The notes: generated from the letters alone by a model not told the origin. Positions 8,901 through 64,000 are shown, numbered from the stretch's first letter. The stretch: DNA of 64,000 nt from Haliotis rubra (GCF_003918875.1 NW_025765314.1:124001-188000); one strand, 5' to 3'. A program made the numbers and translations.

Positions 8901-9655
8901 CTGTGGATAGAACGCAATTAAATATTTTGTGTACAATAGGCAGTAAATAACAATCAAATTCAATCAAATATTCATTTATAATGCAATCAAGTCCATGAGA
9001 TTTATCCCGTTTCAAACCGTTTATCGCTTGCTTTATTTCAATCAATGTTATTTCATTATCAAGTTCTGATACCACATTTGAGTCATTCAGGTTAGAGTCA
9101 GTAGCAGAGATATTTTCGTCATTACCTGCAATGTTTTTAAAATGTGCATACATTTCAGATAGGGGAATGTCAATGTTTGTCTTCTTCCGTTTCGAAAACA
9201 TTGCATGAAATTGTTTCGGGTTAATTCTTTTCAACTGCTCGAGTCTACTGCCCCCAGATTTTAGATACCGTCGTTTATATTTCTTTTCTAATGTTTTATA
9301 TGTCTTCTTCTCCATAAGTAATTCAGCGTGGTTATAATATGTTTTACTGCGATTAAATTTATCAAGTGAACGAACATAGTCCATGTAGCATGTTTTCAGA
9401 GAGTCATCAAACCACGGTTTATCACCGATCCGGACCGGGGCACGTGGTTTGCTGATGTCTCAGCGATTGTGTGTGTGGTTGTTGTTGATGTCACGTGACC
9501 CTTGTCTATTGCATGTTTTGAAGAACGGTGACATAACATCAGTAAGGATTGTTGTGAAGTTGTCGATACTCTTGCCCATGCACGGTTGTGATGTAATATT
9601 ATCTTCAATAAAAGAGCTTTCCAATCGGTCGATGTTAGAAAGTAGCGCTAACTTA

Positions 9656-35700: not shown

Positions 35701-36211
35701 CTGTGTAAGTCTTCATAAGTATTTCCGGCTTTCGTAATTCGCATCCTTTGAACTTCTCTTCAAAGGTGCTCTCGTTGATGATCGAGTGCCTCGACCCGGT
35801 ATCCAACTCGAATTGCATATCACTGCCGTTGATATTAACAGTCACCCAAATAACATCGGCACCTTTTTCTTGCAAAGCATACATATGACTCAAACAATCC
35901 GCAAGGTCATCAGGATACAGTTCACTGTCATTTTCTGTGTCAATTGCCTTCACACGAGAAGTCCTTGAATTGTTGACATCGCCATGTTTTCTCACCACGC
36001 CACTTCCGGAAGATGAAGGCCGTGAACTTGAACCTGGGTCATGACTCGACCTCTGACCTCTACACACCGACTGCAAATGCCCTCGCTTGTGACAGTTCAA
36101 ACACACGGTGTCTTTATGCTTACAAGCGTTTGCGAGATGAAAAACGCTTCCACATCGGAAACACCATTTACTGCCAGAGTTTTTAGGTTTGCTGTTAAAA
36201 AACATATACAT
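32777..36211 (-). CDS. pol: Gypsy CCHC knuckles, protease, RT, RNase H and integrase (1144 aa)
   Basis: Two zinc knuckles, LDTGS protease, RT with HQDD, RNase H (LACDA, TDH), integrase HHCC and D-D-E (HMDFAGP, TDNG, GQAER). Confidence 0.93.
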   Translation of the reverse strand: MYMFFNSKPKNSGSKWCFRCGSVFHLANACKHKDTVCLNCHKRGHLQSVCRGQRSSHDPGSSSRPSSSGSGVVRKHGDVNNSRTSRVKAIDTENDSELYPDDLADCLSHMYALQEKGADVIWVTVNINGSDMQFELDTGSRHSIINESTFEEKFKGCELRKPEILMKTYTGQHVLDFGIMKVDVTNGKDVHELDLHVVKGEGPPLLGRSWLPFVKIDWKRLGDEIHYCKEDKSDTQIQELLVKYCDVFSDQIGTIKDIRAHLSLKDGMSPRFMKARPVPYALQERVNEEIDRMEKNGVLVKVDHSEWATPIVPVIKSDSSVRIRGDFKSTVNPVLNINKYPLHKIEDLFATLAGGQKFSKIDLAHAYQQMEVDADCQKYLTINTPKGLFRYTRLAFGIASAPAIFQAAMDQVLQGLDKVLCHQDDILVTGANDKEHFRNLEQVLKRLQDYGLRVKKQKCTFFVDSVKYLGHVIDRNGLHTSQDKVQAVQDAPRPENVSQLRSFLGAVNYYGRFMRNLSTVLQRLNNLLRKDRKLVWSLQCEAAFNKCKAMIASSEVLCHYDPSRPLRLACDAYSYGLGAVLSHVMSDGLERPIAFASRTLSAAERGYSQIDREALGIIFGVKRFHQYLYGRHFTLITDHRPLTALFGTGKPVPAITAARMQRWALILSAYDYIIEYRASEKHANADVLSRLPLSTTLQNENFHDDVALFYNSQFEQLPLSCADVRNETRRDALLSEVYTAVMNGWSKEHEDNALMKHFYTRRNELSVHMGCVMWGMRVVIPMKMREHVLQELHMGHFGVVKMKSVARSYIWWPGIDSDIEGIAKTCSACQSNQANPSSAPVRPWSWPSRPWHRIHMDFAGPFIGHMFLLITDAYSKWPEIIIMKSTTSAATVKEVRKLFAQFGLPHQLVTDNGPQFVSNEFEAFLKSNGVKHVLSAPYHPATNGQAERLVQSFKQSMRASENSDGNVEKKVAQFLLAYRAAPHCVTNETPAKLFLGRELRTRLDLLKPDIQSVMSTKLLSQSGNMTETRQVDGKVWVRDYRGADKWVPGQVTAQHGERHYDVDVGNGQCRRHIDQLRSREEHNISLQIEPDLPERCAAPTRDSNHASVSCGETSSLEPVLQPTPRRSSRTIRPPDRVNLYLGNI

Positions 36212-36771
36212 CCGAAGCAGTACTTCCCCTTCAAACTGTCAGAGCCTCTGCTTAGTTCCTCGCAATCCTTCGCTGCTAACTCCATAGAATTTGCGATAGC
36301 AAGTGCACGATCAAGAGTCAGGTCATTTTCTGCAAGTAATTTCCTTTGAATCGAAGTAGATCTTAATCCAAGCACTAACTGATCACGTAAACGTTCATTC
36401 AAAGTGTTTTCAAACTGGCAATTCCGAGTAAGTCCTCTCAAAACCACAGAATATTGCGAAATAGTCTCACCGTCAGCTTGCATTCTCTTGTGAAATCGGT
36501 ATCTCTCTGCTATCACGAGCGGGGCTGGTGTGAAATGATTCTGTAACAGGGTTACCAATTCACCAAGAGTCCGGTCTTGTGGTCTTGCCGGCGCGGTCAA
36601 CGACTTCAGCACTGCATAAGTCTTACTTCCAATCATGGACAAAAATCCTGACACACGACGAGCAACAATGACTTCATTAGCATCAAAGAATAACTGCACT
36701 CTTTCGGCATATGATGCCCAATCCTCCTCGTTTTCTTCAAAAATCCCAACTTCACCAATGACGCCCGCCAT
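36097..36771 (-). CDS. gag: Gypsy gag N-terminal part (frameshifted against the downstream ORF near 36200)
   Basis: WASYAERVQLFF, ERYRFHKRMQADGETI, LRDQLVLGL. Confidence 0.85.
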   Translation of the reverse strand: MAGVIGEVGIFEENEEDWASYAERVQLFFDANEVIVARRVSGFLSMIGSKTYAVLKSLTAPARPQDRTLGELVTLLQNHFTPAPLVIAERYRFHKRMQADGETISQYSVVLRGLTRNCQFENTLNERLRDQLVLGLRSTSIQRKLLAENDLTLDRALAIANSMELAAKDCEELSRGSDSLKGKYCFGCICFLTANLKTLAVNGVSDVEAFFISQTLVSIKTPCV

Positions 36772-39680: not shown

Positions 39681-42600
39681 AATTCAAAACTGCTACTCTG
39701 CCAAGCGGGCGACCTACACGTACAGTGAAAGGAAGGGGGAATAACTCCTGTCTATCGCCAATAAAGATCAAGGGAGGCGATTCCTGTCACCTTACGTCAA
39801 AATACATTTTATACCAAAATAAGACCATGAACAACGCAAAGAATATAATACAAACAATCGAAATAGGGTCTGGGCAGATTTAATAAACTAGCAGAAGCAT
39901 GGTATACATATACATGATAAGTACAATACATTGCTTAATGCTGTGATGTTACATTTGTAATATAATGCATTAAGCTCCAAGCCCAAAACACTAATGATGA
40001 AAGTGATGAGATAGTAAAACTTGAAAGTGTAAACTGGTAAACTCTAACGAGATGTGGTTAAGTACAAAGTAAGTGAGAAATGGGCAAGGACTTTCCAAAG
40101 GCTTTAAGGGCCTCCATCGTAGTAGTATGTTGTACTTTCAAATAACGCAAATAAGCCGAGCGTTTCCAAATACTATATCTTGGATTATTTACCCAGGTAA
40201 GCCTACTGAGAAAGCCCAACTAGCGCCACCTCTTCGAAAAGAGTGACCAGTGACAATCTCGGTCACACCCTCCTTCTCCAACACATACTGCACAGTATCA
40301 ATAAACGTACTCTGCTGCAAAGGATGGAAATCAGGAGTACAAAACAATGGCGCATTCTCCTCCGAATTCTTGTGAAGAGACAACAAATGAGACATAGCAC
40401 ATACTGGATATAAAGGATGACCAGATATTTCTGGTAGCAAAATGTCTAACTTCTTGTCTCTGAACTGCAATGTTTTGGTCCAGTGTAACTGGATCCGAAC
40501 GCCACCTTTAACCTGAAAAATATCTTTAATACAAATAGCTCTACTGGAATCAAAACACCTTTACACAAGAAATTTCCAGGGCGTAACATACCATAAAAGG
40601 CAACTAAACAGGCTGCCCAAATGGATGAACCCAGCACACATTGTAAGTCCAGTCTAGAGTATAAAAGTAGCAGCATTTTTGGTGTAATCGGCACAGCTCC
40701 TTTCTGAGCATCTCCAAGCTCTCGTCGAACACCCTGCATAACATGCTGCACTAACCAAATTCCCTGTACAGGGTCTACATAACCATGAGCTTTATGGACA
40801 GTAGAAACAATGCACAAATATTGCTTTACAGTAAAAAATTGAACTTCTTAAAGTCAACTAGGTAAGCTATATACAAAAGAATGTTGTGGACATCAATAGG
40901 CAGAGGATCAACATTAATCCTTTCACAAAATTCCATAAAACATTTCAGCTAACTGTTGTAAGTAGCCTTTGAACACTCTGCCCAACCTTGACTTTCAAGG
41001 CGTTTCATCGTGCTCTGTAGGTACATCCTGAATTTCACCCCATCTGAAAGCAATGAATTCCTTACGCATTCAAATAGCTGTACACTGGGCAATAAATCAT
41101 ACATCTGAGATAGACGGCCCTGCTCCGTAAGTCTAGAGATGATATCCGCCACTTCATTTTTACACCCAGGAATGTATTCTGCATGAAAAGAGAAATTATA
41201 GGTAGCCTGCATCCAAAATAAACATCTTAAATATGACATAACAGTACTAGAAGTAGAGGATTTCTTATTAATAATAGCTTTAAATTGTCAGTTCTAACGA
41301 TAACTTTTCTAATCCTCCATGCTGAGCACCACCTCAAAGCCGATAGAATCGCTATAAGCTTCTCTTTGTAATTGATGTGCAAGTTCGACACTGAAGGAAG
41401 ATCTAACTGCCAATTAATGTACATAAAGTCTCCTTCATAATATGCACCACCACCTGTTAAACAACCATCCGTTTGAAGTGATCTAACAGGTCTATCGTCC
41501 AGAAACTGTTTCTTCCCATTAAAAGTCTCCACAAACGAACACCACCAAGTCAAGTCCTCTTTAAACGAAGGATCCAGTATGGCTTTATCTTTGTTAGACT
41601 TCAGCTTGTTTTTCACGTCTATACCACGCCTCATGAGCGTCCTACCACCCTGAACCACCATGCTGGCCCAGCTCAATTTTCCAACCAATGATTCTAATTG
41701 TTTTTTATCAGCTCTTTTCTTTTGTAAAAACCCACACAACAGCTTCTTAATGTCTTGAAGTCTATTAGCTGACAATGCTAGCACACAAGATGTAGTGTCT
41801 ACCAACACACCCAGAAATGTGATAACTTGATTGGGTCCATCAACTTTATTCCAGTTAATGTTAAATCCTAATCTTCTCAGCACCTGTGACAGAATTGCTT
41901 CAGCTTCAGCACACTCCTTCTCACTCTCAGCTATGACTAAAAAATCATCTAAATTTGCCACAACTTTTATACCGTAGCGCTTCTCCATAATCCGACACAC
42001 TGCACTGCTCAGTGTTTGAAATATTTTTGGACTTTTAGAAGCACCGAATGGCAATCCTGTATCACATATATACACAGTCTCCTCTGATACACCAAACTTC
42101 CATCTTAAACCAGTAAATGTATAGTTGCTAGGATGGTTGCGTACTGAGCGGTATGCACTTTTAAGATCAACCTTTGCCAGATAGGACCCTCTCTTTATAA
42201 ACTGCAAAGCATGCCTTAGGTCCATATATGAGCACTCACAATTAAACATATAACTGTTCATACCTCCTCCTTCTGGAAAACTCCCATCATGAATTAAACG
42301 AATTTTCGTTGATGATTTCATAATGGCACCAATTGGACTGACAGTAGCTGGCTTCTCTGACACAACCTTGTAATGTCCAAGGTTAATTTCTTCACTAATT
42401 TGACCTTCAGTTAACTTTCTGTTTTCAAATGCAGATCTATGATTTTTTTAGCAACGCTGTACCAAATGCACAACATCCTCTATGTCAATTAGATGGAATC
42501 CATCTCGAACACCCTCTAGAATAAAATCTCTATCTTGGTCCTGCTCTGGCAGAAGTTGTTCCCAGGCCTCATACTTCAGTGAATCCTTGAAAATGTCGGA

Positions 42601-46309: not shown

Positions 46310-49300
46310 AGTAAGTAGTGTAGCATTACAGTAAGGAAGCATTGTAACCTTACAATAAGTACTGTAGCATAACAGTTAGTACTGTAGCATAACAGTTAGT
46401 ACTGTAGCATAACAGTTAGTACTGTAGCATAACAGTTAGTACTGTAGCATTACAGTAAGGAAGCATTGTAGCCTTACAATAAGTACTGTAGCATAACAGT
46501 TAGTACTGTAGCATAACAGTTAGTACTGTAGCATAACAGTTAGTACTGTAGCATTACAGTAAGGAAGCATTGTAGCCTTACAATAAGTACTGTAGCATAA
46601 CAGTTAGTACTGTAGCATAACAGTCAGTACTGTAGCATAACAGTTAGTACTGTAGCATAACAGTTAGTACTGTAGCATAACAGTTAGTACTGTAACATTA
46701 CAGTAAGGAAGCATTGTGGCCTTACAATAAGTACTGTAGCATAACAGTTATTACAGTCAGTTCTGTAGCATAACAGTTAGTACGGTAGCATAACAGTTAG
46801 TACTGTAGCATAACAGTTAGTACTGTAGCATAACAGTTAGTACTGTAGCATAACAGTTAGTACTGTAGCATAACAGTTAGTACTGTAACATTACAGTAAG
46901 GAAGCATCGTAGGCTTACAATATGTACTGTAGCATAACAGTTAGTACAGTCAGTACTGTAGCATAACAGTAAGTACGGTAGCATAACAGTTAGCACTGTA
47001 GCATAACAGTTAGTACGGTAGCATAACAGTTAGTACGGTAGCATAACAGTTAGTACTGTAACATTACAGTAAGGAAGCATTGTAGCCTTACAATAAGTAC
47101 TGTAGCATAACAGTTAGTACTGTAGCATAACAGTTAGTGCTGTAGCATAACAGTTAGTACTGTAGCATTACAGTAAGTACTGTAGCATAACAGTTAGTAC
47201 TGTAACATTACAGTAAGGAAGCATTGTAGCCTTACAATAAGTACTGTAGCATAACAGTTAGTACAGTCAGTACTGTAGCATAACAGTTAGTACAGTCAGT
47301 ACTGTAGCATAACAGTTAGTACGGTAGCATAACAGTTAGTACTGTAGCATAACAGTTAGTACGGTAGCATAACAGTTAGTACTGTAGCATTACAGTAAGT
47401 ACTGTAGCATAACAGTTAGTACAGTAACATTACAGTAAGGAAGCATTGTAGCCTTACAATAAGTACTGTAGCATAACAGTTAGTACAGTCAGTACTGTAG
47501 CATAACAGTTAGTACGGTAGCATAACAGTTAGTACTGTAGCATAACAGTTAGTACTGTAGCATAACAGTTAGTACGGTAGCATAACAGTTAGTACTGTAA
47601 CATTACAGTAAGGAAGCATTGTAGGTTTACAATAAGTACTGTAGCATAACAGTTAGTACTGTAGCATAACAGTTAGTACTGTAGCATAACAGTTAGTACG
47701 GTAGCATAACAGTTAGTACTGTAGCATTACAGTTAGTATTGTAGCATAACAGTAAGTACTGTAGCATAACAGTTAGTACTGTAGCATAACAGTTCGTACG
47801 GTAGCATAACAGTTAGTACTGTAGCATAACAGTTAGTACTGTAGCATTACAGTTAGTACTGTAGCATTACAGTAAGGAAGCATTGTAGTCTTACAATAAG
47901 TACTGTAGCATAACAGTTAGTACTGTAGCATAACAGTTAGTACTGTAGCATAACAGTTAGTACTGTAGCATTACAGTAAGGAAGCATTGTAGCCTTACAA
48001 TAAGTACTGTAGCATAACAGTTAGTACAGTAGCATAACAGTTAGTACTGTAGCATAACTGTTAGTACTGAAGCATAACAGTTAGTACTGTAGCATAACAG
48101 TTAGTACTGTAGCATAACAGTAAGGAAGGATTGTAGCCTTACAATAAGTACTGTAGCATAACAGTTAGTACTGTAGCATAACAGTAAGGAAGGATTGTAG
48201 CCTTACAATAAGTACTGTAGCATAACAGTTAGTACTGTAGCATAACAGTTAGTACTGTAGCATAACAGTTAGTACGGTAGCATAACAGTTAGTACTGTAG
48301 CATTACAGTAAGGAAGCATTGTAGCCTTACAATAAGTACTGTAGCATAACAGTTAGTACAGTTAGTACTGTAGCATAACAGTTAATACTGTAGCATTACA
48401 GTAAGGAAGCATTGTAGCCTTACAATAATTACTGTAGCATAACAGTTAGTACTGTAGCATAACTGTTAGTACTGTAGCATTGCAGTAAGGAAGGATTGTA
48501 GACTTACAGTAAGGACTGTAGCATTACATTAAGGGTTGTAGCATTACAGTAAGGAAGTACTGTAGCATTACATTAAGGGCTGCACATAGCATTACAGTAA
48601 GGAAGCACCGTAGCGGTACAGGAAGCACCGTAGCATTACAGTTAGCACCGTAGCGGTACAGTAAGCACCGTTGCATTACAGTAAGTACCGTAGCATTACA
48701 GTAAGCACCGTAGCATTACGGTACGTACCGTAGCATTACAGTAAGTACCGTAGCATTACAGTAAGCACCGTAGCAATACAGTAAGCACCGTAGCATTACA
48801 GTAAGTGCCGCAGCATTACAGTAAGCACCGTAGCATTACAGTAAGCACCCTAGATGGTACAGTAAGCACCGTAGCATTACAATAAGCACCGTAGCATTAC
48901 AGTTAGCACCGTAGAATTACAGTAAGCACCGTAGCGGTAAAGTAAGCACCGTAGCATTACAGTAAGCACCGTAGCATTACAGTAAGCATCCTAGATGGCA
49001 CAGTACGCACCGTAGCATTACAGTAACCACTGTAGCATTACAGTAAGCACCGTAGCATTACAGTAAGCAACGTAGCTTTACAGTAAGCAACGTAGCTTTA
49101 CAGTAAGCACCATAGCGTTACAGTAAGCACCGTAGCGGTACAGTAAGCACCGTAGCGGTACAGTAAGCACCGTAGCATTACAGTAAGCACTGTAGCATTA
49201 CAGTAAGCAACGTAGCTTTACAGTAAGCACCATAGCGTTACAGTAAGCACCGTAGATGGTACAGTACGCACCGCAGCATTACAGTAAGCACCGTAGCATT

Positions 49301-49350
49301 ACAGTAAGCACTGTAGCATTACAGTAAGTACCGTAGCGTTACAGTAATAT
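46310..49350. repeat. About 3-kb minisatellite, 20-bp unit AGTACTGTAGCATAACAGTT and variants
   Basis: Roughly 150 units with an interspersed AAGGAAGCATTGTAGCCTTACAATA block. The unit changes to AGCACCGTAGCATTACAGTA after about 48600. Confidence 0.97.
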
Positions 49351-49488: not shown

Positions 49489-51473
49489 AACAATCCAGTC
49501 CCTGAATACAAAAGGAAACGGGCGAATGCCAGGAAAAGAATGGGGAGATTAAGGCAAAGGGTATGTCTTTTAACTTTAAGACACTGTCTACGTATATTTA
49601 TGTTGTGCCTAATAACTAAGTTTGTGTTCGTATTCGTTCATGCCCTTCGTTCATGCCCTATAAAGTTTACATTTTAAAAGCTTTCCTAGAGAATACATAT
49701 TTTTCTATATGAAATAAATACAATATATTCAAATTCTTTATCATTGTTGTTTTACTTGCCTTACTTTACATTAAGGTGCGGAATTTTTGTAAAATTCAAG
49801 GGATGCCACAAATGGCCCTAGTGCACCTCGCAACCGAGGGAACATTGAAGGTTGTTGGTATGCTTTTTTTACATTTCATCTGAAATCATATCCAGATTGT
49901 TAATGTCGAATAGCCTGACATGCCGTCTTGGGTGTACACAAATAGAGCTCTCGTCAATGCTGAACTTCTTAATTACTGATATAGTATTTAAAAACAAAGT
50001 ATATGTGCTAATATAAAAAACGTTTCGCTCAATTGAAATAACATTTCGTTCCCATATTGTAAAATATATTATATATAAGTAAGTGGACTATCTATTGAAA
50101 AAACTCGTGTCTCATCGCTTTACCATAAAATACAATCACTTAAAGCTTTTAATGCCTTTTAACTTAATTATATTAAAACAGGACACCAAGATATGGTTGA
50201 GGCTGTTGGCCGCAGCAACCTGGTTAACATACTGAATATTGCCCGGTAGCGCCCGCTACCACTCAGGAAGGTACGTGCTCTCACTCCTCATACTTTACTT
50301 ACAGTAAGAGCATAACATATATCATGTTAAATACCACCTTATTTAATTTGAAATATTTTTAGAGGAAAAAGTCGACCTTCGACGCATTTCCGTGGCGGTG
50401 GACTACGCCGACGTCCGGGACGTCCACCTATTAAGACGAGCGGTCACTCAGGTCACAATTGACAAAGGTAAAGTCTGTGCGTTTTGGGTGCGTGCGTGCA
50501 TGCTTGTGTATCGTCACACATAAGAAAGAATTATTCAATATTATTTATACCATATTATTAGAATTACCTGCAATGTAACATATATGATATAATCTATCCT
50601 GTTGTTCCCAGGTGCCAAGGGATCCCGATGTATTTGGGGAAACGAAGGCCTTCGGCCTTCTTGGTGGCCTGAGGGTGTGCCGTTTGTGGCGCCCTCAGCA
50701 ACACACACGGACGATGGTATGCTTATCACACAAATCTCCTAATCTCAAACTTTTACTCAGGAATGGAAATTATGTAAAGTCCACTTCTTTCCCAGAATGA
50801 AAATCGATGTTAATTAAGGTCATGTACTAATAATCTCAAGTACATGACCTTTTAATGGATAACAACTTCAGCATAACAGTCACCTAATCACGTACCCATA
50901 AGTAGCACTGGTACGTCCTTACCAGCAATAGACAGTTGTCTCCATGTCCTTCCAACGCATACCACATGCCTCGCAAAGAATCAATAAGTACTTTTTTCCA
51001 ACTGTATCCTTAAGAATTCATATGGAAATAAATATAGCAATGAGCAATGATATATTTAGTTAATGTTCTTCTCAACACGGTCCTCGCTGTAGTCGACGCA
51101 CAGTATATAGTGCTACTGAGAAACATGTTATTGCTTTCATGTGGATGCTTCGTGTAGAAGTCGTCAATAAGGGGCATTAACACGATTGTTGAAGAAGGGG
51201 GGTTCAATGCAACCTGTATCATATGTATTATTTATTCAAAAAATAATAAAAGTGTATTTGTAATTATATTGTGTCATTCTAAAAGTTTTTTCAGTGATTA
51301 AGTTGTAAATAATATTCATGCTCACGCATATCGGTTACACTTTACAATTATAGAAACAAATAAGGTGTTAATAATCACAATAATCTTCGATCTCAGCTGG
51401 CACAAAACATCGGCTGCAGACGGCAGACAAGATGAGACATATCATGTGCAGCTGGAAACGCCACGTGATATCG
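49489..51473 (+). pseudogene. Spliced exon chain encoding an NRF1/Ewg-like DNA-binding region (one lesion)
   Basis: AG/GT-bounded exons 49489-49560, 49776-49857, 50182-50270 (contains TAG or a frameshift), 50363-50467, 50612-50716 and 51397-51473. Translation: EYKRKRANARKRMGRLRQR-VRNFCKIQGMPQMALVHLATEGTLKVVG-HQDMVEAV...CIWGNEGLRPSWWPEGVPFVAP...DKMRHIMCSWKRH. Confidence 0.65.
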
Positions 51474-52210
51474 GTAATATACATGATATATTATATTCTT
51501 TTTCTGAAAACCATAAATTAAAGTATATTTTAAATTATCTCTCTAGCCGAGTTATAGTTCAGGAGGCTGTCTTAAGGGTTCTCCCTCACGGGCCTTGTTT
51601 TGAGTAACTTTCATTGTTGACAAATTACGAACGGAAATGGATTCTATTTATTCCTTTTTCAGAAACTTAATTCTAGCGGTTATGTCAATTCGGCCGATAG
51701 CCATGAAGTGGTATTATCCCTGTATTTGCGTTGTTTGTTGAAGTTTCTATTTAATTGTTCCTTTTCCTTTCAGTTTTCACAATACTAACCAACATATAGA
51801 GCACTGTCTTGATATAGACATGACTCACCTACACCATCATTCCAGCGTGCAATGTACACAATACTCCATTAACTGTAGGTAACTTTTACATTTTGCCGGT
51901 AATCCGCCCAATATCAATCTGGCAATTTTGCTAATTTCCAAAGTTCTTACCCCAAACTCTCGATCAGATTTCTACAGTTCTTAATTGTTCTTAATTGAGC
52001 AAAACATATTAGGTTTTATTTAGTTTATATACTTTCAATGTACAGCAAACATTATGCTTGTACATAATCATTTTTGTATGTTTTGTTACGTAAGAAAACA
52101 ATGCAAACAATGACATTAAAATATATTATGGAATATTAGGGTTATAGTTCGTGTCTTTCATTGGTGTTCTCACCATGCACAGCTAACAAGAGCATCTGTA
52201 CTTCAATAGA

Positions 52211-52375
52211 CTGACTGACTGAGTTTAGTTTTACGCCGCTTTTAGCAATATTCCAGCAATATCACGGCGGGGGACACCAGAAATGGGCTTAACACATTGT
52301 GCCCATGTGGGGAATCGAACCCGGGTCTTCGCCGTGACTAGTCAACGCTTTAACCACTAGGCTACCCCACCGCCC
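52211..52375 (-). mobile_element. tRNA-derived SINE family A, copy 3
   Basis: Reverse complement of copy 1, with 11-bp TSD ACTTCAATAGA (52200-52210, 52376-52386). Confidence 0.93.
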
Positions 52376-52954
52376 ACTTCAATAGAACATGTCATATCAT
52401 ATATTGAATAGCTGGTATCTACTCATCAGAGTTGCCAATTTCTACAATTATGTTTCTTATTTTATAGTTTATACACTAACTTCGTTATGTAATGAATCAA
52501 TAATTTTTGAATGATATAAAGTTAATTGTAATAAGTTCAACATTTAATTGAAGCGTTATGTTTACGCCTAAGTGCATTTCGGCACACATATTCAAAGTAA
52601 ATTATCCTCACATTACATATTTTTTTGTCTTATAGCTTTGTGTCTAATGGCTATATTTATATTTTAGCTTGAACAGATAATCAGCAAGAACCTAGTAAGT
52701 AAAATCATTCATAACAACAAAGCATTAAAACATATATCCATTTTGCGTCAGAAAGGTAACAGGTCAATAAAACAATCTGCCATGTAATAAACACCACATA
52801 CATCCATGTTGCATCTGGAATTCTGCTGATTTCTTTGTATTTGTACCACGTATTAAATGCCTGCTTCAATTACAATGCAACTAATACACACACAGGATCA
52901 ATGCCATGTGGCCTTCACAAATCTCATTTACCCGTTTACTGCTTGTTGATGAAC

Positions 52955-55092
52955 TTATGGCGCTTACAGGTGTAGTGAGGACGTTTCCTTACCTAAACAG
53001 TGAGATGTTTATGATAAATACACAGTACCAATGGAAAGTGGCGCTTACAACTGTAGAACGTCCGTTTTCTGACTTAAGCGCCTCACAGGTACACTGTTTG
53101 CCAAAAGTGAGATGGTTCTAATAAATACGCACTTCATGAATCACATGTGGTGCTTACAACTGTAGAGTGCCCGTTTTCTGACTTAAGCGCCACACAGGTA
53201 CCCTGTTTGCCAAAAGTGAGATGGTTCTGATAAATACACTTCATCAATCACATGTGGCGCTTACAGCTGTAGAGTGCCCGTTTTCTGACTTATAAGGGCC
53301 TCACAGGTACACTGTTTGCCAAAAGTGAGATGGTTCTAATAAATACGCACTTCATGAATCACATGTGGCGCTTACAGCTGTAGAGTGCCCGTTTTCTGAC
53401 TTATAAACGCCACACAGATACACTGTTTGCCAAAAGTAAGATGTTTCTAATAAAAACGCACTTCATCAATCACATGTGCTTACAGCTGTAGTGTACCCGT
53501 TTTCTGACTTATAAGCGCCACACAGGTACACTGTTTGCCAAAAGTGAGATGTTTCTGATAAATACACTTCATCAATCACATGTGGCGCTTGCAGCTGTAG
53601 AGTGCCCGTTTTCTGACTTATAAGCGCCACACAGGTACCCTGTTTGCCAAAAGTGAGATGGTTCTAATAAATAAATAATAATAATAATATGGTAATGTTT
53701 GCGCCTAGAATCCAACACGATGCTGCTCTCTGGCGTTACATTATTACCCTGACGGAATTGTACTTTCAAAGCTGCTACTAAGCGCTTCGCGCGACCGTAT
53801 AGGTCCGTACATCCGCTTCCCAGGTACCCATGTTAAACAGCTGGGTGGACTGAGTGCAATGTGGACGAAGTGCCTTGCCCAGGGACACAACACAGTATGA
53901 GACCCAGGTCACAAATTCTGGTGTCTCCACCGGGATTCGAACCCCGGCCTGTGGCGTGCGAGGCCAGCATGCTAACCACTACACCACTGTGCTCCACTTC
54001 ACATGTGGCGCTTACAGCTGTAGAGTGCCCGTTTTCTAACTTTAAGCGCCACACAGGTACCCTGTTTGCCAAAAGTAAGATGGTTCTGCCAAAATCACAG
54101 TAAGATGTTTCTGAATAAGCGCCACACAAGTACCCTGTTTACCAAAGTGAGATGGTTCTGATAAATACACTTCATCAATCACATGCGCTTACAGCTGTAG
54201 AGTGCCCGTTTTCTGACTTATAAGCGCCACACAGGTACCCTGTTTGCCAAAAGTGAGATGGTTCTGATAAATACACTTCATCAATCACATGTGGCGCTTA
54301 CAACTGTAGAGTGCCCGTTTTCTGACTTATAAGCGCCCCACAGGTACCCTGTTTGCCAAAAGTGAGATGGTTCTGATAAATACACTTCATCAATCACATG
54401 TGGCGCTTACAGCTGTAGAGTGCCCGTTTTCTGACTTATAAGCGCCACACAGGTACCCTGTTTGCCAAAAGTGAGATGGTTCTGATAAATACACTTCACA
54501 CGTGGCGCTTACAGCTGTAGAGTGCCCGTTTTCTAACTTAAGCGCCATAAACCTATACAGTTGGTAACAGGCGCCCAGAGTAAATATACAAGATCAGTGA
54601 CCTGTAGCAAGTCCTTCTTGAACTAGTTTCAACTCGTGTCGTATATGAAACTTAACGAATTCCATCTAACATGCTGCCAGGAACCTCTCAATGACACACC
54701 GTTGTTTTCCCACTTGTAGCCACCAGCCGAAAATATAAGCCAGCAATCCCAAGAGAAATGCTGCGGCTTGGAGAGCGCCATGAGAAAGGTAGATTTAGAC
54801 AGGAACATTTGCTTAAACCTACCCCGTCATTATCCTCCAACCTACTCACATAGAAGGGATGCGTCCCAAAAGGTTTAGACACTTTGTAAATGGCATGTGG
54901 CGCTTACAACTGTAGAGTGCCCGTTTTCTGACTTATAAGCGCCACACAGGTACCTTGTTTGCCAAAAGTGAGATGGTTCTGATAAATACACTTCATCAAT
55001 CACATGTGGCGCTTACAATTGCAAGAGTGCCCGTTTTCTGACTTATAAGCGCCCCACAGGTACACTGTTTGCCAAAAGTGAGGTGGTTCTAA
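52955..55092. repeat. Intronic tandem array of a ~109-bp unit (about 15 full or partial copies)
   Basis: Unit CACATGTGGCGCTTACAGCTGTAGAGTGCCCGTTTTCTGACTTATAAGCGCCACACAGGTACCCTGTTTGCCAAAAGTGAGATGGTTCTGATAAATACACTTCATCAAT. Interrupted by a SINE and by a unique, exon-bearing segment at 54550-54890. Confidence 0.95.
53670..53995 (-). mobile_element. tRNA-derived CORE-like SINE (family B) with L2-type tail
   Basis: Minus strand: tRNA head GGAGCACAGTGGTGTAGTGG...GGTTCGAATCCC, CORE-like GTGTCCCTGGGCAAGGCACTT...CCACCCAGCTGT..ATGGGTACC, (TTA)n tail. Confidence 0.85.
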
Positions 55093-56157
55093 CAGAGAAC
55101 AAAATTCGAGTAAACGCGTTTTAAGAGTCATATTTTTGAAACCTTAGAGCCATATGAAATAGTCTAGAGTTTAAACAATCATTTGTATTTTATTCGCCTA
55201 CAGAATGATCCCAGTGGTGCCATCTCTGCAATAGTGGATGGACTCTATTGTATGAAACATTTGGAGGACATCGAAGCGGGAGGCATCTTTAAATTCCGAT
55301 TTGCGCCAAACTGTGTGCCCAACACGAGAAGGTATGGTGATAGTAAAGCGAGTTGGTATTCGTATATACTCTAGCATTGTTTCAGCTGAATATAACGGTT
55401 ATTTTTTTACATAATTAGGTCTGTGCGCAGCATACGGCCTACAATGACATCCAATCATGCAACATGGTCACACGTGTGAACTGATCTGTATCCACTCTCT
55501 AAGGCCATGGTTGCGCCGTAAAGTCGAACATCACACTATAACTATACTGTTTAGACATTTCTTAGTATTAGGACAAAAATGAATCAAGTCACTATATTTT
55601 CCTACAGGCAATTTGTCGAGGTACCCTCTTCAAAGGTAGCATTTGGGGAGGGGAGCTCACTTTGGGAAGTATTCGGAGGATTCCCCGATGTTCTTGTGCT
55701 GGCCACTTTCGCACATGGCTTTGTGCACAAGGAGCATTACGCTCAACAGGTGAGTATTTACCAAAAGCCAAAAGTCCTTTGTAAATGAGACATTCTAAAT
55801 ATCAACAGCTCACTTTTTGCGTAATATTGATACCATTCCCCGCTCTGTAATTCGTGCTTTTTATGTCGTTAGTTGAACTTATTCACGAAGGAATAAGCAC
55901 AAGATGTAAATTTTGCCACAGCACATGTTTTTGGCCGAAATATTTGTACACACATTGACGTACATGTCCAATATATTATCAGCTCATCAAGTTGGGCGAA
56001 ACAGCCGAATCTTTAGGCGAGCGTTTCGGCATCCGTGCCTCCACTGAACAGTCAGTGGAGGATGTGGTAGCAGCAGCAACGGAAAGGATCCTAGCTGGTC
56101 CCAGCATGCCCAGTGAGTATTTAAACAATTATGTTTAGTTTTCCATTATGTTGATGA

Positions 56158-56420
56158 CATCTGTGTATATATTTTCTAGGACTCACTGGTACCTACTTGC
56201 AGTGGCACCAGAGAATGCATGGGTTGCTACAAGTAGTACCAATGCCATCTGTGTATATATTTTCTAGGACTCACTGGTACCTACTTGCAGTGGCACCAGA
56301 GAATGCATGGGTTACTACAAGTAGTACCAATGCCATCTGTGTATATATTTTCTAGGACTCACTGGTACCTACTTGCAGTGGCACCAGAGAATGCATGGGT
56401 TACTACAAGTAGTACCAATG
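56158..56420 (+). repeat. 3 x 88-bp tandem copy of the intron/exon junction of the catalytic-His exon
   Basis: Unit contains ...TTTTCTAG|GACTCACTGGTACCTACTTGCAGTGGCACCAGAGAATGCATGG, homologous to 59310-59397. Confidence 0.92.
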
Positions 56421-59117
56421 TTGATAACTAATGCATATACATTAAACTTTATATTGATGTTCAATTAATCTTTTCAATAAATATCCCATGTTGTTGTTAT
56501 ATATGAATGATTTACTGAAGTTGACTCAATTTCATAAGCGTATTATTATAAAATATTAGGAGCTATTCGTAACTTTGTTTCCTTTCTTCTGTGTATCTGT
56601 AATGAACAATGGTTAGGGTGACTTTGCAGTGTACGGACCTATCTGAAAGCGTTCCACGTTTTATGAACTTTCCCCCGTCTTGGTGTTCGATTACTTCTAA
56701 GCGGGGCGTTATAAAGCTTAAACAACCACTCACTGAACTAACTTCTGCAATCCAGACATCGGAACCATTATGCTCATTGCTGGGGCACTAAAGAGGGAGG
56801 TGGTCGTGCACATGGAGGATAGAAAAATTTCAGCACCACCGTGCACATGTTTGGAATACTTTGAAGGCGAGGAGGTGCATGTGTACGTGGACAGAGGCAG
56901 AAGGGCCTACTATCTGACGACAAAAACTGGTGATGGTATAGAAACAAAACTGTAGTCTTGGAAATTTAAATACTTGCAATGTTTGTTTGCTTGATATTTA
57001 ATGCCGCACTGAGCAATATGTCAGTTTTAAGATGGTGGTATGTAAATAATCGAGTCTGGACCAGACAATCATCACTGTTTATGCTACTCGCCTATTAGAA
57101 TTATGTATTCATAATTGTGTTGCATGAAGATCCTTTCAGCAGATAACGTTGTTGAAATTGAAAGGGTTTTGTAACTTTTAGTTAAGGTATATGCAGCGAT
57201 ATATGAAACAAGAGATTCCAGCTGTAGTCACCTGTATACCTTACTCACTGTACAATGGCGTCTCTTGTTGCAGAAAAGACCCACATCATGAAGGAGGCGA
57301 ACAGGTATGTACTAGGTAGTTATTAACATGTCAATCAAGAGTCATAATGACTAGATGTAACTAAACATACAAAAGTAAAGAGAAATTTTCATGATTAGTT
57401 TATTCCGTGACCAGTTTATAACCAGCATGATAACCTGTACTTTATTCCTGCTGCAGATTTGAAACAGAAGATCCTGACAGAAGGTGGGCAAATTTCGAAA
57501 ACACATAAACTGCCACTGCATCCGGCCTGACCTAATTCATATAATGCTTAACAGACAAATATAACATTTTAGAAGAATGAAAGAACTTACATCTCAAAGT
57601 CTTTGATAATTGTTCCAAAGTTTGTTATCCTGCTTTTGTCGAGACGATTCCGGCCATAAAGAAAATCCTCTAAATAAATGTTAAAGAGAAAACTTGACCC
57701 AAGGAGGAAGGCTTCAGGGACAATAAATATATGCAACTATCTTTTTCAGAGTCATACTTTATAAAAGGCTTTTCGTAACAGCAACAGAACTCAGAGCTGT
57801 TATGGCTAATGAATGGCTTGACGACCATGTCGTCGACACCCGTCTTTGGTAACTATCTGCTTTGTTAAAAGAGAAAATATATTGGAAATATACCAGCGGA
57901 AAGATTAACTTTCAGTACAAGTTAGCAAACACTTACAAAACATAAGAGATCCCTTTACTCAAAACCGACCAAAACATTGCATATCATTGTGCAATTCTAT
58001 TCCAAAGTTCACTTAGGTATCGTTCTGGTGTATAAAGTCTTGGAGGTTGTCATTTATGAAAATAAAATTTAAAACAAACGTTGTTCGACCTTGCCAACTC
58101 TTTGAATAGTTCATCTTTGATAAAAGCAAAACATTACAAGCTCTTCAGAAAGATCAACAATTTATCAATATTTTATTGTACATTTAGCATCTTCAAAGAC
58201 GAAAATGACGCCGAGACGGTGGTCATGCTGGCAACCACGGGGATTCTGCTCCAAGCTAAAACACCACAGTACCAGTCAGTATCTGTTTCGCGAACATCTT
58301 GTGTCATCACTAATTTACAGTGATCTTTTACTATGTATATATTGTTTGTTGCTATTTTGAGTACGCCCAAGGAAGTTTGGCAGATAAGCAAACTCATTAT
58401 TCTTTAGCGTTGACTATCGTGTATGATCGTAACTAGGTCGATGTTCCCCAAAGTTCACTCATGAACTACAAACTAAATGTTTGGGCCGAGACATTAAGAC
58501 CCCCATCCCCATCGTTGGCAAATAACCACAATGCATTGTGTCACTGGGCTATTGTGTACATGGATTACCTGATCCTTCACGTGAAGATCCTGTCAACACT
58601 CCATTGTTTACAGGTCACATCACATGGCAGCACGTGTGTGTCCTATACAAAAACATTTGTTTTTCATATTCAAATTGTGAGTGGCACATGCTAACGGCAG
58701 GTCCTTAGATAGAGTCAATTATGTCCATAATTTTCACATAATCAAGACTAGATATTCTATGACTTTTGATGTTTCACATTTATGATAAAATAGAAAACTG
58801 GTTTATGTTAACTTAGAACTTATGTTTTCCAATCTGATATATCTTCTTACTACCTATAACATTTTCATCTGAGATTCCCTATTGTACATATGAGCATGAC
58901 CAATTTCTTTTCTTCTCTTCCTAGGAAATTGAAGAAAATGACATGCTTCCTGGGGAACATGATTGTTCCCATATGCACAGGGTAATCATATGTACCGTAT
59001 TATTTGTCTTTCATATTCAATTACTGGGAGTGAAAATTACCTAAACAATAATATGTTATTATCACTACCTGTGTGCAGGAATTACTACAGTTAGTACCAT
59101 TGGCAACTGTGGATCGT

Positions 59118-59351
59118 TTTTCTAGGACTCACTGGTACCTACTGTCAGTGGCACCAGAGAATGCATGGGTTACTACAAGTAGTACCAATGCCATCTGTGT
59201 ATATATTTTACTGGCAGTGGCACCAGAGAATGCATGGGTTACTACAAGTAGTACCAATGCCATCTGTGTATATATTTTACTGGCAGTGGCACCAGAGAAT
59301 GCATGGGTTACTACAAGTAGTACCAATGCCATCTGTGTATCTATTTTCTAG
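59118..59351 (+). repeat. Local tandem copies (69+69+88 bp) of the same junction, immediately upstream of the true His exon
   Basis: Visible as the 23-aa repeat LLAVAPENAWVTTSSTNAICVYI in the ORF track. Confidence 0.9.
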
Positions 59352-61826
59352 GACTCACTGGTACCTTCTTGCAGTGGGACCAGAGCATGCCTGGGTTCTC
59401 TGTTCCATGGGAGGGCGGTACCGGGTGCTAGAGAGGAACATAAAACGGTAACACTCTGCAACATGTAATCTCTGTTTAATATTTAGCTTCACTTAATGTG
59501 TGACAATACATTTATTTAGATGTTATTAAGATTACCAAGATTAAACATATAATATATCTATAGCATGTCAGCACTATTCCAGCTATGCAGTTGTGATCAA
59601 GTGTTGGTCAGCATGCAAAACCACTAAAACCATGTGCAGTAATCCATGTCATCTTTTTGGTTACATGCAATTGGCCAAGCGCCTGACCAATCGATTCTCC
59701 ACAGTGGTTGGGTTCTTACACCAACAGATAAAGGAAGTAAATGTTAAGACATTACTGCTCTCATTTCCACATTCATTTCATACACATGAGTATATAAACA
59801 ATATCAGGAAAATATTCTTTACGAACCTATCAAAAGAATGAAGATATCATAATTTCATTGCAGACTACTAGGAAAGACATGTATCTACCCTAAGGTAAAG
59901 TCGAAGCTTCAATTCAATGTATTCATCAATTTTACACAAGCATATATATACACACCCGTGCATTAATTAAGCACCATATGGCATAATGCTGCAGAAAAGT
60001 TAGGGTGTAGCCATCAATTTGATCAACCTACAGTTAAAGAAGCTTTATCCATTAACAGGTTTACAAATACCACACATGAAATAATTATTACATTCACTTT
60101 TCAAAATAAGGTAACTTGTTTTAGGACGGGAAAACACACGTTTCTGATATAGACAGTTATCCTAATTAAAGTACTACGTTATTTCAATCATGTTTTCGTT
60201 TTTAAAATATTATATGCTTGCTCTGTCAAATTATCAATATTATTTTTCGGAAAGTGTGTAGATTTTCATTTCATACAAAATTAACTGGCAAAAATACAGG
60301 GTGGTGCTTACTTTATGCACGGATGTATATCATTAATAATCCAACAGTTTCAACAACAAATTAGAAAGCAATCACATTTAAGATATTTGATGAAATGTAT
60401 TAATACTTCATTCTCGAAAACGTCTTAAAAAACATGCTGGTGTTCAAATGTAAATTATCATATCAATAACAATTATAATTTCTAGGTTCCTAAACAGACA
60501 AATGGCCGAGACTGTGGCGTGTTCACAGTGATGTATGCTGTGGGTCTACTGAAGGTACACCATCATGTCTGATATTATTAAACAGCAATTTCTCTGAAAT
60601 AAATCAGTGAGATGAGTCAGTAGTCAAAATAATTTAGTTGTTTTTTTTTTTAGTCAGTAAAGGACATTTTACGGTAATCTATTTGAGTAAAATGTGACTA
60701 TTCTTACATTTACAATTTTTTTGGTTTAATTTTATATGTTAAATGCAGAGTACACCCTCATCCAACACAAAACAATTTCTTGTACAAATTTACAAATTAC
60801 TAATGAAACTGTTTTGTGCCTTTTAAGGAAAGCAATTGGAGCCAAATACAGTGGCCAACACTCGTGTCATCTGACATAGAAGACACGGGGAGACAGCTCA
60901 TACATGACACATTAATGAAATGGTGCTGTTGAATACAAACGTGAGTATGCCAGAAAAGGAAAACAATTTATACATATATAACATTATGTTTCTTTGTAAA
61001 AACATCTCTATTCATAGTGAATCAATATTAAAACCCTAAATGTGTTGGTGTTGCTATACCTGGTAACCTGATGTTTTTTTATATCTGTAATGTTTTACAG
61101 ACAAAATACATTCAACATGAGCAAACTGAAACAATTGTCAACGTGAGTAGAATACATAAAACTGAATAACCACCAGCATATACATATGTACAATACGGTG
61201 GAGAAACTCTATGTATGTGCAGCTCAATTCAATTTGCATATTTATAATGCAAGAAACAAAAAGTAGGGGACCAATGAGACATCAACATGAGAGATCAGCT
61301 CTTACACAAAATTACTCAACAGCCTCTAGAAACACAATGAAAAGTATCTATTTATTTGTGAAGGCACTAGGAGAAACTTAAGGTGATATTCTGCATAGGT
61401 AAGGTCTGTTGAAGCAAGTGGACTTGAAATTACCAAATACCAAGTGTATTTCTTGCTGACAATCATTATACCAAAAGACATTTTGATAAATGACAACTTA
61501 AAGCAATAAATGTTAACCTTACATTTTCAAAGTTTGATTTTTTCTCAGATGACCTCATATTTTCTTTAATGTGACCTGGCATTGACATTGCAGTGTACTA
61601 AGTAAAGTACCATGGATCAAGGGACATAACAATTTTCAAACTCAGCCTGTAGGTCTTAGATAAGCATGCAGGAAGCATGATAGTAACTTCAGTAGCTTCT
61701 GAGAAAACTTGTCCCCATTGCACACACAATGTACGGAGTTGATAAGAATGGAGCAAAGGCCATAACTCTGTTTGGATGTACAGTGATGGTCCTGTTTGAA
61801 CAATATTTCAAAATGAAAGTTCTTAT

Positions 61827-63719
61827 TTATAGCGTTGAATACACTTTTGATAGAATTTGGAAGAGGGCAGTATACTGTTTTAGTTTATTTTCTTGCTTTG
61901 CTGCCATTGATACCATGCTTCGAAACCAAACATAAAATTTACAGTGTGACATAAAATGGTCTACATCCATGTATGAAAGCATACTTCTTAATTTATTCAA
62001 TGTAGCATTCCGTTGTTCAGCTACTTGAGTATTCATGCTTCTGTATTTATTGTATTTTGATAGATTGTATCCATCATGACAACCTGCAAACAAAAAGTAG
62101 GTCAATGGATGACTTCAGAATTTTATTATCATAAGAGGTATGTAGCCAGAGACTTATGATGGTTACCAAACCAAAATATGTGAAGTATTGACAATTATGC
62201 TACTGTCACAGAACAATGCTGTGCATTCAGACAAGGATAAGGTTACAGGTATACTACCACCAAATGGTTATATTACCAAACATATTGCTGATGAAATAAA
62301 TAAATGATTGACAAAAGCATATATGTAAAAAACAATGACATACACACAACATTACTGATTCATGAAAAAGTGCTTTTTAAAGGTATTGGTAAACATTAAA
62401 TGATTCAAAAGACTAAAACCCTTCATTTGAACTTCATGTATACTGAAAATTAAAACACAGACAAAGGTACCAGTTCAATGCTTGCCTGATGTTTCAAAGC
62501 TTGTGTATACTGCTATTAATATTATGATGCATTACTGTCATGATTTACAATAAATCATAATGAAAACTGACTTTAAAAAAGGTTACCTTTGTGATTTGGC
62601 CAGTGGAATCGGTCAACAACAAACCAGGTGTTTTTGAAAAAACCTGGATCTCGGTTCATACAATATGCATGCAGGTTACATACATTGTCATAGATGACCA
62701 TCTTGGGAGCTGTGAATATAGATATGCTGTTGAAATGTTTTGGTCATGATAGGCATTAAGAAGTTGCGTATTTAAGTAATATTTTTTATATCAACTTATC
62801 TGTTGTCTACACACAGGCGAGGGCTACACCTCACCTTCTCGAACTACATGCAAACTTTGGGCAGGGTGTGTGTACATATACAAGTTTTATTGTCATAGCT
62901 AACAGCAAAGTCATGATTCAATTTAGTTCTGATTTATTCTGAGAGCAACATTCAAATAAAACATACTCTGATCACAAACATCATTTTCTGCATGATAAAA
63001 CTAGTGGTTTCAGCCATACCAGGGTAAAGAATATATACATGCTGAAAAACAATTGAGTGAACTTTATTTACCCAAGGCTGTAATTATCAATACATGTACA
63101 AGACAAGCATGCAATGACATGAGCTCTCTAGAAACTGAAAGAAGGATATCAACTCACCTTTCTTGAACCGTGTACGGAGAAGGGTGAAGGGAACATTTGG
63201 GGACTCAGCATCCTGCATCATTCTAAATCCATAGCACACACCTACAAAAGATGTTTTTGTGAACAGATTATAAGCATTCACCCCAGATTATAACCCTGCA
63301 TGTTAATCCCATAATTGTGTTATTGGTTTATTAGTTAAGGACTAGAAAAACATTTGAATGTTTGTCATTATTATTACCTTGGGTGACCTTGATATTAATA
63401 GAATGTCTTTTGAATGAAATCACCTCACTTAGTATAATGTATTGCAAGTATGATAAAAAATATTCAAGTTTGTATTGAGTTCTATTGCATAAAACTTTAT
63501 GATGAACTAGTTGATGAGACATAAGGCCAAACAACATTCACCATGTTGACAGGATAAAGTGAACAATCCTGGGGTCAGTGAATGATGACTCCCAGGACTT
63601 TTCCTGCAGGGTCCCCTTTGGTTCTTGTCATCCAAAACATATGAGCCTCTCCGGTTGCAGACATTCAGTGATGGAAAGTACAGGGTCCTCATGTCTGGAT
63701 GTGCTTCTGATTCAGAAAT
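61827..63719 (-). CDS. KDZ (Kyakuja-Dileera-Zisupton)-type transposase catalytic region, last four exons; 5' part lies beyond the window
   Basis: Exons 63719-63542, 63241-63158, 62709-62587 and 62083-61827 are all GT-AG and phase compatible with no stops. Translation: ...CRKSPGSHHSLTPGLFTLSCQHG-VCYGFRMMQDAESPNVPFTLLRTRFKK-APKMVIYDNVCNLHAYCMNRDPGFFKNTWFVVDRFHWPNHK-GCHDGYNL...MNTQVAEQRNATLNKLRSMLSYM. Confidence 0.85.
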
Positions 63720-64000
63720 CTATGAAATAAGATAAATTACTTTATAAGGTGAAAGTAAAAATCCATTTAGTTATATTTCATGAGAAAATATAATGAAAAG
63801 TTTATGTAATTCTGGGCTACACAAATTCAAAATTTAATACTAAGTGATTCATTAATAAGAAATTCTTGTATCATGGATATGGAAAAGGTATTTCAGGTGC
63901 AGATTACTTTCGACGTACTCCATAAAATAACATCTATCAACAAGTAACAACCATTTAACAATTCAAGACGAAGACTGAAATTGCTGTACATGCCTCTAAA

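Follow-up and report, generated by a model that had tools for sequence, protein, structure and literature searches.

The KDZ/Zisupton elements rank with the most poorly understood DNA transposons: movement has been witnessed for fungal copies only, and most animal copies are concealed in annotations behind the name 'uncharacterized protein'. The subject of this analysis is the region 49.4-64 kb of a 64,000-nucleotide stretch of Haliotis rubra DNA (the window), in which a KDZ transposase gene on the minus strand converges with a plus-strand accessory gene carrying NRF1-like, candidate OTU-like and C48/Ulp1 protease exons. In fish, a SUMO-type protease is reportedly associated with the Zisupton element. 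The SUMO protease and SWIM are domains of the transposase protein itself in Zisupton sensu stricto, the fish form. Other DNA transposons consist of two genes: PIF/Harbinger encodes a transposase and a Myb-like protein, and CACTA/En-Spm encodes TnpD and TnpA. Animal Zisupton is multi-exon, and KDZ relatives occur in lancelets, sea stars and mussels (PMC9297572). The elements KDZ1-3 and KDZx1 of Cryptococcus are low-copy, measure ~6-11 kb, contain several open reading frames, have terminal inverted repeats (TIRs) and 7-8 bp target site duplications (TSDs), and have been observed to jump; antisense RNA runs over the transposase gene of KDZ1 (PMC11588098). The fungal transposons Kyakuja, Dileera and Zisupton carry TET/JBP genes (PMC12730594). 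Ulp1 or OTU domains are encoded by Ginger1, KI-MULE and Helitron elements, and Ginger1-9_HM joins Ulp1 and PHD. A role in chromatin or repair deubiquitination or deSUMOylation has been proposed for the Ulp1/OTU domains of Ginger1, MULE and Helitron (PMC2836005).

Sequence comparison indicates that the KDZ gene and the NRF1-like/C48 gene of the window form one conserved unit, which is probably mobile. The region is read as a single copy, in its left and central portions, of a large KDZ element with two genes and many introns, an interpretation considered rather likely. The G+C content of the window is 32-45%, exons are short and introns long. Transcript evidence consists of contigs, not reads, from the public runs X8 and X9 (organism B), the kind of each run being guessed by a tool. 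The public runs with the stretch bear two species labels (A and B), which are treated as sister species. Both genes are transcribed and spliced in the sister species.

The KDZ transposase gene and its recurring partner

Stop-free pieces of the minus strand show the motifs CQHG, CYGF..ES, YDNVC, DRFHWPNH and NTQVAEQRN. KDZ proteins match four colinear minus-strand exons in tblastn searches. Contigs of X8 and X9 splice these exons at three joints (Table 1) with GT..AG borders on the minus strand, and leave the introns without cover. Once spliced, the exons (the last being 61830-62083 less its stop codon) yield a lesion-free frame of 213 amino acids (aa). A reading made earlier from the sequence alone (the sequence-only reading) had described this four-exon frame with its motifs, and the exact splice joints bear it out. 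The spliced frame shows 50-57% identity over 170-190 aa (blastp, E 1e-60 to 1e-70) with proteins of scallop, pearl oyster, sea star, lancelet and jellyfish. Four of these relatives (P0050, P0095, P0040 and P0171) exceed the cut-off of Pfam KDZ (PF18758). One exon of the window by itself reaches E 0.017 with the same profile, under the cut-off. The last exon is placed in KDZ clusters of the language-model Atlas (0.94-0.97). A phmmer search with this exon against 1.84 billion representative proteins identified 192 relatives, the long ones having Pfam KDZ above the cut-off together with the zinc-chelating CxC4 domain. A match to the KDZ profile, which the same reading had anticipated, was found on the exon and through the relatives of the spliced frame, and the minus-strand gene is assigned by these similarities to the KDZ transposase family (PF18758).

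The tblastn matches reach only residues ~575-718 of 736 in a KDZ homologue; what the window contains is thus the C-terminal quarter of the protein, the last ~190 of ~870 residues. The next upstream exon was not found within 63720-64000; the rest of the gene lies past base 64000. The frame ends 20-30 residues past the KDZ domain, as in all homologues. Full-length KDZ homologues (860-950 aa) have CxC4 and end directly after the KDZ domain, and neither SWIM nor C48 was matched in six full-length or long ones. The full-length relatives P0152, P0162 and P0167 are labelled 'HMG domain-containing protein' in UniRef, which hints at an HMG box in the N-terminal part, encoded beyond the window.

The C48 part of the accessory gene is joined in the same contigs at two joints with GT..AG borders on the plus strand. 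The protease thus lies on a separate convergent transcript, as had been proposed, the KDZ joints being on the minus strand. The exon 60486-60554 reads VPKQTNGRDCGVF, corresponds to positions 162-182 of Pfam C48 and holds the Cys in a Q-x-N-x-x-D-C-G context. Its Pfam score is under the cut-off, as is that of the NRF1-like exon, which is expected for exons of 23-30 residues. Homologous exons occur at KDZ loci of Rhopilema esculentum (L006) and Xenia (L009) and in two metagenome contigs (L083 and L061). The preceding small exon (LLGKTCIYPK) matches TAIYPR in L006, and the last exon begins with ESNWSQ.

Seven other KDZ loci have NRF1-like, OTU, PHD or C48 exons: Rhopilema, Xenia, Argopecten and four metagenome contigs. 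The metagenome loci come from a scan that added 78 KDZ loci, searched with small profiles made from already recovered partner exons. In all seven, the partner exons lie downstream of KDZ on the opposite strand. Chance adjacency is therefore set aside, and the co-occurrence in convergent orientation that had been named as a test of the pairing was found at these loci. Among the 19 KDZ loci with at least 3 kb of downstream flank, six have a partner.

The partner in the jellyfish Rhopilema at L006 is convergent with KDZ and has the order NRF1-like, OTU (GDGNCLF), PHD, C48. Pfam E-values are 0.0012 for its NRF1-like exon, 7e-4 for PHD and 0.002 for the C48 Cys exon (VPRQNGGIDCG). Four anchors are colinear between this partner and the accessory gene of the window. 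In the soft coral Xenia, the C48 Cys exon follows the KDZ stop at a distance of 0.7 kb, is on the opposite strand and scores 21.1 bits, above the Pfam cut-off. Argopecten irradians (L004) has an annotated convergent neighbour with C48 and PHD; the pairing is of the same kind, without detectable similarity to the Rhopilema partner in 2 kb. The metagenome loci show OTU and PHD (L047), C48 and a weak NRF1-like match (L083), an NRF1-like exon (L079) and C48 (L061). The OTU motifs are clear in L006 and L047 (GDGNCLF/GDGNCFY and NHVIPV/NHIIPL). No partner was found within 10 kb in L002, Pinctada L005, Branchiostoma L007, Patiria L008 or the Rhopilema paralogue L010, where it may be absent, farther off, or too diverged to detect.

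An alternative is that two separate elements lie side by side, a KDZ transposon and either an unrelated Ulp1/OTU element of the Ginger1, MULE or Helitron type or a host SENP-like gene. Ulp1 and OTU domains do occur in several other transposon superfamilies (PMC2836005), and the window is repeat-rich. This account is highly improbable given the pairing at seven other loci, for which chance would be about (1/4)^7 if side and strand are taken as independent; moreover, no integrase, MULE or helicase frame was seen in 49-64 kb, and the 3' ends of the transcripts overlap. For the preferred reading as one element, the term 'cargo', applied earlier to the accessory gene, is probably wrong, since the gene stays with the transposase from cnidarians to the window's genome. 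It would be a second element-encoded protein rather than a passenger.

Several repeats and neighbours were observed at the compared loci. A 115-bp tandem satellite (L006 13281-15026) fills the gap between the convergent genes of Rhopilema, and the degenerate partner region of Xenia contains long satellite arrays at ~15-17 kb of its locus. It seems that the KDZ/partner units are accompanied by tandem repeats. In L079 (metagenome contig ERZ1740059 NODE-880, 8763-10517), only 1.5 kb separates the KDZ stop from the NRF1-like exon, a distance too short for OTU, PHD and C48 and their introns; in this lineage the partner may be shorter or have its parts in another order. The partnerless Rhopilema paralogue L010 (SWAQ01000004.1) lies between two huge, oppositely oriented EGF/Sushi-domain gene models and has the appearance of an insertion, either within a duplicated host gene or next to one.

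Structure of the accessory gene and the convergent 3' ends

The NRF1-like exon shows 48% identity with L006 22572-22664. With Pfam Nrf1_DNA-bind (PF10491), the window exon scores 16.9 bits and the Rhopilema exon 19.0 bits, both under the curated cut-off of 23.5 bits. The core G-x-x-G/C-I/V-W-G-x-x-G-x-K/R-P-x-WWP aligns with profile positions 151-171 (127-171 in Rhopilema). PF11001, a YDR124W-like helical bundle, scores about equally on this exon. The term 'NRF1-like' denotes resemblance, not membership, since only the GWG..WWP core matches. A segment at 50347..50520 on the plus strand (..HLLRRAVTQVTIDKGK, followed by a GTATGT donor) is possibly a preceding NRF1-like exon, by comparison with the NRF1 consensus; it gave no Pfam match.

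The OTU-like part was approached with profiles from L006 and L047. Against the OTU-His profile, 56737-56952 ranks first at a non-significant E of 0.22. The segment 55168-55371 is colinear with the GDGNCLF exon of L006 and three other anchors. An OTU catalytic-Cys exon was not recovered in the window with a profile of the L006 and L047 Cys exons or with Pfam (OTU, PF02338), and no PHD-like exon was found in the window. From the plus-strand modules named in the sequence-only reading, the NRF1-like and C48 exons held, while the OTU-like region is weakly suggested by the Atlas clusters (0.91-0.93) and the profile rank. Of the more than 20 exons counted there, three are supported by RNA-contig joints and about four more by homology or motif.

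A candidate C48 His piece (NHNALCHWAIVYMD, within 58437-58691) gave no Pfam or Protein Data Bank (PDB) match and has no RNA-contig cover. The exon pieces had no useful match among PDB sequences (phmmer), the exons being too short. A frame in an 88/69-bp tandem repeat ('HWYLLAVAPENAW'), resembling 'HWILVVANLENDW' of L006, was rejected as C48 His exon at a noise-level score. The L006 match falls in the inferred intron between TAIYPR and VPRQNGG, which counts against a His reading. The repeat is one unit in two accessory-gene introns, with arrays at 56154-56420 (3 x 88 bp) and 59140-59347 (3 x 69 bp); the likeness of its open frame (..THWYLLAVAPENAWVTTSS..) to the C48 His motif is judged to be chance.

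Other repeats lie in the introns as well. No tRNA was found at 53038-54547 with ARAGORN, despite translation motifs resembling tRNA or a short interspersed element (SINE) at ~53700-54100. In both DNA runs, contig depth relative to neighbouring unique sequence is ~40-140x at 59950-60349 and 5-10x at 58150-58349. These two segments are high-copy short repeats, similar to SINEs or to miniature inverted-repeat transposable elements.

The poly(A) site of the KDZ mRNA lies near 59460, with a poly-T contig end before 59471 and ATTAAA 15-20 nt upstream on the minus strand. The KDZ 3' untranslated region (UTR) crosses the last three exons of the plus-strand gene. KDZ contigs run past the stop to ~59460 and the plus-strand joints lie in the same interval; the 3' ends of the two mRNAs therefore share more than 1 kb. 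The stop codons of the two genes are 894 bp apart, and the earlier figure of less than 700 bp between the genes is to be corrected. A 792-bp segment between the stop codons is interpreted as an indel, not an intron, because its joint is also found in the DNA-like run X4. In the allele without it, the stop codons are ~100 bp apart and the transcripts overlap. Neither TSD nor TIR was found at the indel. The segment is partly covered by other contigs of X4 at lower depth, probably an indel polymorphism, and diverged copies of it (~88% identity) occur elsewhere in the genome.

Table 1. Positions in the window of the exons, transcript features and repeats of the two-gene unit, with the evidence for each
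Feature	Position	Strand	Evidence
KDZ exon (..YFPSLNV..GLFTLSCQHG)	63542..63719	-	tblastn; RNA joint 63241/63542; loose contig end at 63721
KDZ exon (VCYGFRMMQDAESPNVPFTLLRTRFKK)	63158..63241	-	RNA joints 62709/63158 and 63241/63542; splice sites; tblastn
KDZ exon (APKMVIYDNVCNLH..DRFHWPNHKG)	62587..62709	-	Pfam KDZ E 0.017; RNA joints; 60-74% identity with homologues
KDZ last coding exon (..NTQVAEQRNATL..), stop 61827-61829	61827..62083	-	phmmer; Atlas; RNA joint 62083/62587
KDZ mRNA 3' UTR, inferred	59460..61826	-	X8/X9 cover 59471-60983 and 61776 on; contigs, not reads
792-bp segment between the stop codons, missing in one allele or species	60984..61775	.	Joint 60983>61776 in X8, X9 and X4
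Accessory gene, last coding exon (ESNWSQIQWPTL..MKWCC), stop TGA 60930-60932	60828..60932	+	RNA joint 60554/60828 in X8 and X9
C48/Ulp1 catalytic-Cys exon (VPKQTNGRDCGVFTVMYAVGLLK)	60486..60554	+	Pfam Peptidase_C48 E 0.0027; RNA joints on both sides
Small C48 exon (..LLGKTCIYPK)	59864..59894	+	RNA joint 59894/60486 in X8; 5' end is a predicted acceptor only
Candidate C48 N-terminal exon (ELRAVMANEWLDDHVVD)	within 57727..57849	+	Motif; low RNA-contig cover in 57750-57949; no Pfam match
Candidate OTU-like C-terminal exon	within 56737..56952	+	OTU-like Atlas clusters 0.91-0.93; OTU-His profile E 0.22
Possible OTU N-terminal exon (..RLQNDPSGAISAIVDGLYC..)	55168..55371	+	Local alignment score 41, not significant; no Pfam match
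Two 109-bp satellite arrays with a SINE-like piece between them, in an accessory-gene intron	53038..54547	.	Tandem Repeats Finder (TRF)
NRF1-like DNA-binding exon (core 50620-50712, GSRCIWGNEGLRPSWWPEGVPF)	50593..50739	+	Pfam Nrf1_DNA-bind E 0.005; also in L079
20-bp minisatellite, 146 copies, immediately 5' of the first NRF1-like exons	46310..49347	.	TRF

Mobility and gene-like traits

Mobility of the conserved unit is suggested by its distribution. Divergent KDZ paralogues occur in Argopecten (three) and Rhopilema (two). The KDZ tree conflicts with the species tree: Pecten and Crassostrea angulata group together, away from Argopecten; Magallana gigas and C. angulata each occupy a long branch of their own; and the window sequence groups with Xenia and a metatranscriptome protein. 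The numbers of KDZ-domain genes are unequal between the sister oysters C. gigas and C. angulata (PMC10546077). Decayed or partnerless copies exist, such as the Xenia model of 375 aa with no annotated partner. In the window, 1-46 kb is packed with remains of LINE, Gypsy-like, DIRS-like, Tc1 and hAT elements. A Gypsy/BEL-like retrotransposon at 32777-36771 (minus strand) has an uninterrupted pol frame of 1144 aa and a gag-like frame of 224 aa and is possibly young. A 543-aa reverse transcriptase (RT)/RNase H frame of a non-LTR element (24396-26027), Tc1/mariner pieces (10116-11184) and a DIRS-like RT (41227-42363) are also present.

Several observations weigh against a mobile two-gene element at this locus. 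No TIRs, TSD, empty site or element ends were found there, the right end lying past the window and the left end being recognisable only against a second copy. The earlier proposal of one mobile element longer than 15 kb holds for the pairing of the two genes; its mobile part is not supported by these searches. An inverted-repeat search of L006 gave nothing convincing, and that locus ends 0.45 kb past the partner gene. KDZ exon depth in the DNA run X1 is ~1-2x that of unique contigs at >=80% identity; contig depth is only a rough guide to copy number, and this value indicates no recent amplification. Under the second species label, the locus is present with its introns at ~97-98% identity. Presence under both labels is compatible with a host gene or with an insertion that became fixed long ago. 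Gene-like traits are the intact, spliced state of both genes and the intron positions of the KDZ domain, which are identical in all genomic relatives compared (L002, L004-L007). For 13 of the 19 loci whose flank was long enough, no partner lay within reach. The window copy itself offers a weak OTU part and no firm assignment of the exons for C48 His and Asp.

Some of these traits would suit a domesticated pair, in which an ancient KDZ element lost its ends and both genes were kept as single-copy, expressed, convergent and immobile host genes. Copy number is low, the locus with its introns is common to two species labels, and intact frames, correct splicing, a defined poly(A) site and intron positions conserved across phyla are what such genes would show. 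In RefSeq the relatives are listed like any other gene, as 'uncharacterized protein LOC...' and frequently with isoforms, and transcripts from oysters turn up in numerous runs. Domestication is nevertheless judged unlikely: the tree departs from the species tree, several divergent paralogues occur per genome, some copies are truncated or lack the partner, and the locus sits among transposons, not conserved genes. Replacing changes in four of the six listed KDZ substitutions point the same way, in a sample far too small to decide.

The substitutions between labels A and B comprise five silent and five replacing changes over ten listed sites, too few to separate decay from constraint. The four that alter the protein in the KDZ exons include one giving His at a Pro conserved in the relatives; in the last C48 exon, three of the four listed changes are silent. 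They bear on a further account, in which the locus is an old, immobile and decaying copy with leftover transcription and a non-catalytic accessory protein (OTU degenerate, C48 triad incomplete). Its introns are filled with satellites and high-copy repeats, the substitutions do not look strongly constrained, and the OTU-Cys and PHD exons not found here have OTU and PHD counterparts in the Rhopilema locus and L047. Decay is somewhat unlikely in view of the 213-aa KDZ frame and the last C48 exons, which contain no stops or frameshifts and whose splice sites are correctly used, and of the silent changes in the last C48 exon. A large KDZ element carrying both genes, probably mobile, is kept as the preferred reading.

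Proposed function and comparison with known transposons

In the preferred reading, gene 1 (minus strand, its last four exons in the window) would encode a transposase of ~870 aa with CxC4 and KDZ. By analogy with Zisupton and Cryptococcus KDZ1, it would cut and paste the element with 8-bp target duplications. Gene 2 (plus strand, ~49.5-60.9 kb), transcribed towards gene 1, would encode a protein with an N-terminal NRF1-type module, a divergent OTU-like region and a C-terminal C48/Ulp1 protease, to which relatives add a PHD finger, presumably reading histone tails. The accessory protein may bind element DNA through the NRF1-like module and, while the element transposes or is silenced, may strip chromatin or repair factors of ubiquitin or SUMO. 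The KDZ 3' UTR, antisense over the last three exons of gene 2, could give rise to double-stranded RNA and to control by small RNAs. Movement of the element, the biochemical functions and any role of the antisense overlap are conjectural. A wider reading proposes a pan-metazoan lineage of giant (>=25 kb), intron-rich KDZ transposons with two obligatory genes, the second combining an NRF1-type module, two ubiquitin/SUMO-family proteases and PHD. Their overlapping convergent transcripts would tune chromatin or repair marks and make antisense RNA, and the joint retention of the genes from cnidarians to bilaterians would reflect a requirement for both proteins in movement. This is possible, if somewhat doubtful.

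A partner kept across phyla is a concrete candidate for a second transposition factor, and it places the KDZ superfamily with the DNA transposons that repeatedly, for reasons not yet explained, are found with Ulp1 and OTU proteases. The locus makes it possible to test an NRF1-type DNA-binding module that is not part of a transcription factor, and it provides a natural sense/antisense pair, which may feed small-RNA control. For annotation, such long multi-exon genes in molluscs, cnidarians, echinoderms and lancelets merit a flag as element-derived.

A KDZ element with a conserved NRF1-like/OTU/PHD/C48 partner is not described in the literature searched, the founding studies (Böhne 2012; Iyer 2014) lying outside it. 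This agrees with the initial impression of an architecture unlike described elements, and the two-gene arrangement seems undescribed. The unit resembles Zisupton in its KDZ-type transposase and in a many-exon gene that looks like an ordinary host gene. It differs in that C48 lies on a separate convergent gene with NRF1-like and OTU parts (and PHD in relatives), not in the transposase. Since the protease is outside the transposase and no SWIM was seen, the unit is not a Zisupton in the strict fish sense. With NRF1, Erect wing and P3A2, the accessory protein shares the GWG..WWP core; the match is short and below the cut-off, and the rest of the protein is unrelated to NRF1.

Fungal KDZ elements likewise combine a CxC-type zinc domain with a KDZ transposase and are large and low-copy, with extra genes inside and, in KDZ1, an antisense RNA. 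Their partners, however, are TET/JBP dioxygenases or domain-less proteins instead of NRF1-like, OTU and C48 modules. TIRs, TSDs and jumps are proven in fungi; at the window unit, no TIRs or TSD were found. Because of its introns, it is several times larger than the fungal elements.

Ginger1, MULE and Helitron elements are similar in that DNA transposons encode cysteine proteases of the ubiquitin/SUMO family. In Ginger1 and MULE the protease is fused to the transposase, in Helitron OTU lies within the element protein, and each has one protease type; their transposase classes (integrase-like, MuDR and Rep/helicase) are unlike KDZ. In the window unit, by contrast, a protein distinct from the KDZ transposase would combine a DNA-binding module with two types of protease. 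PIF/Harbinger and CACTA belong to unrelated protein families, but they too keep a transposase together with a second gene for a DNA-binding protein, and a functional analogy with the KDZ unit is proposed.

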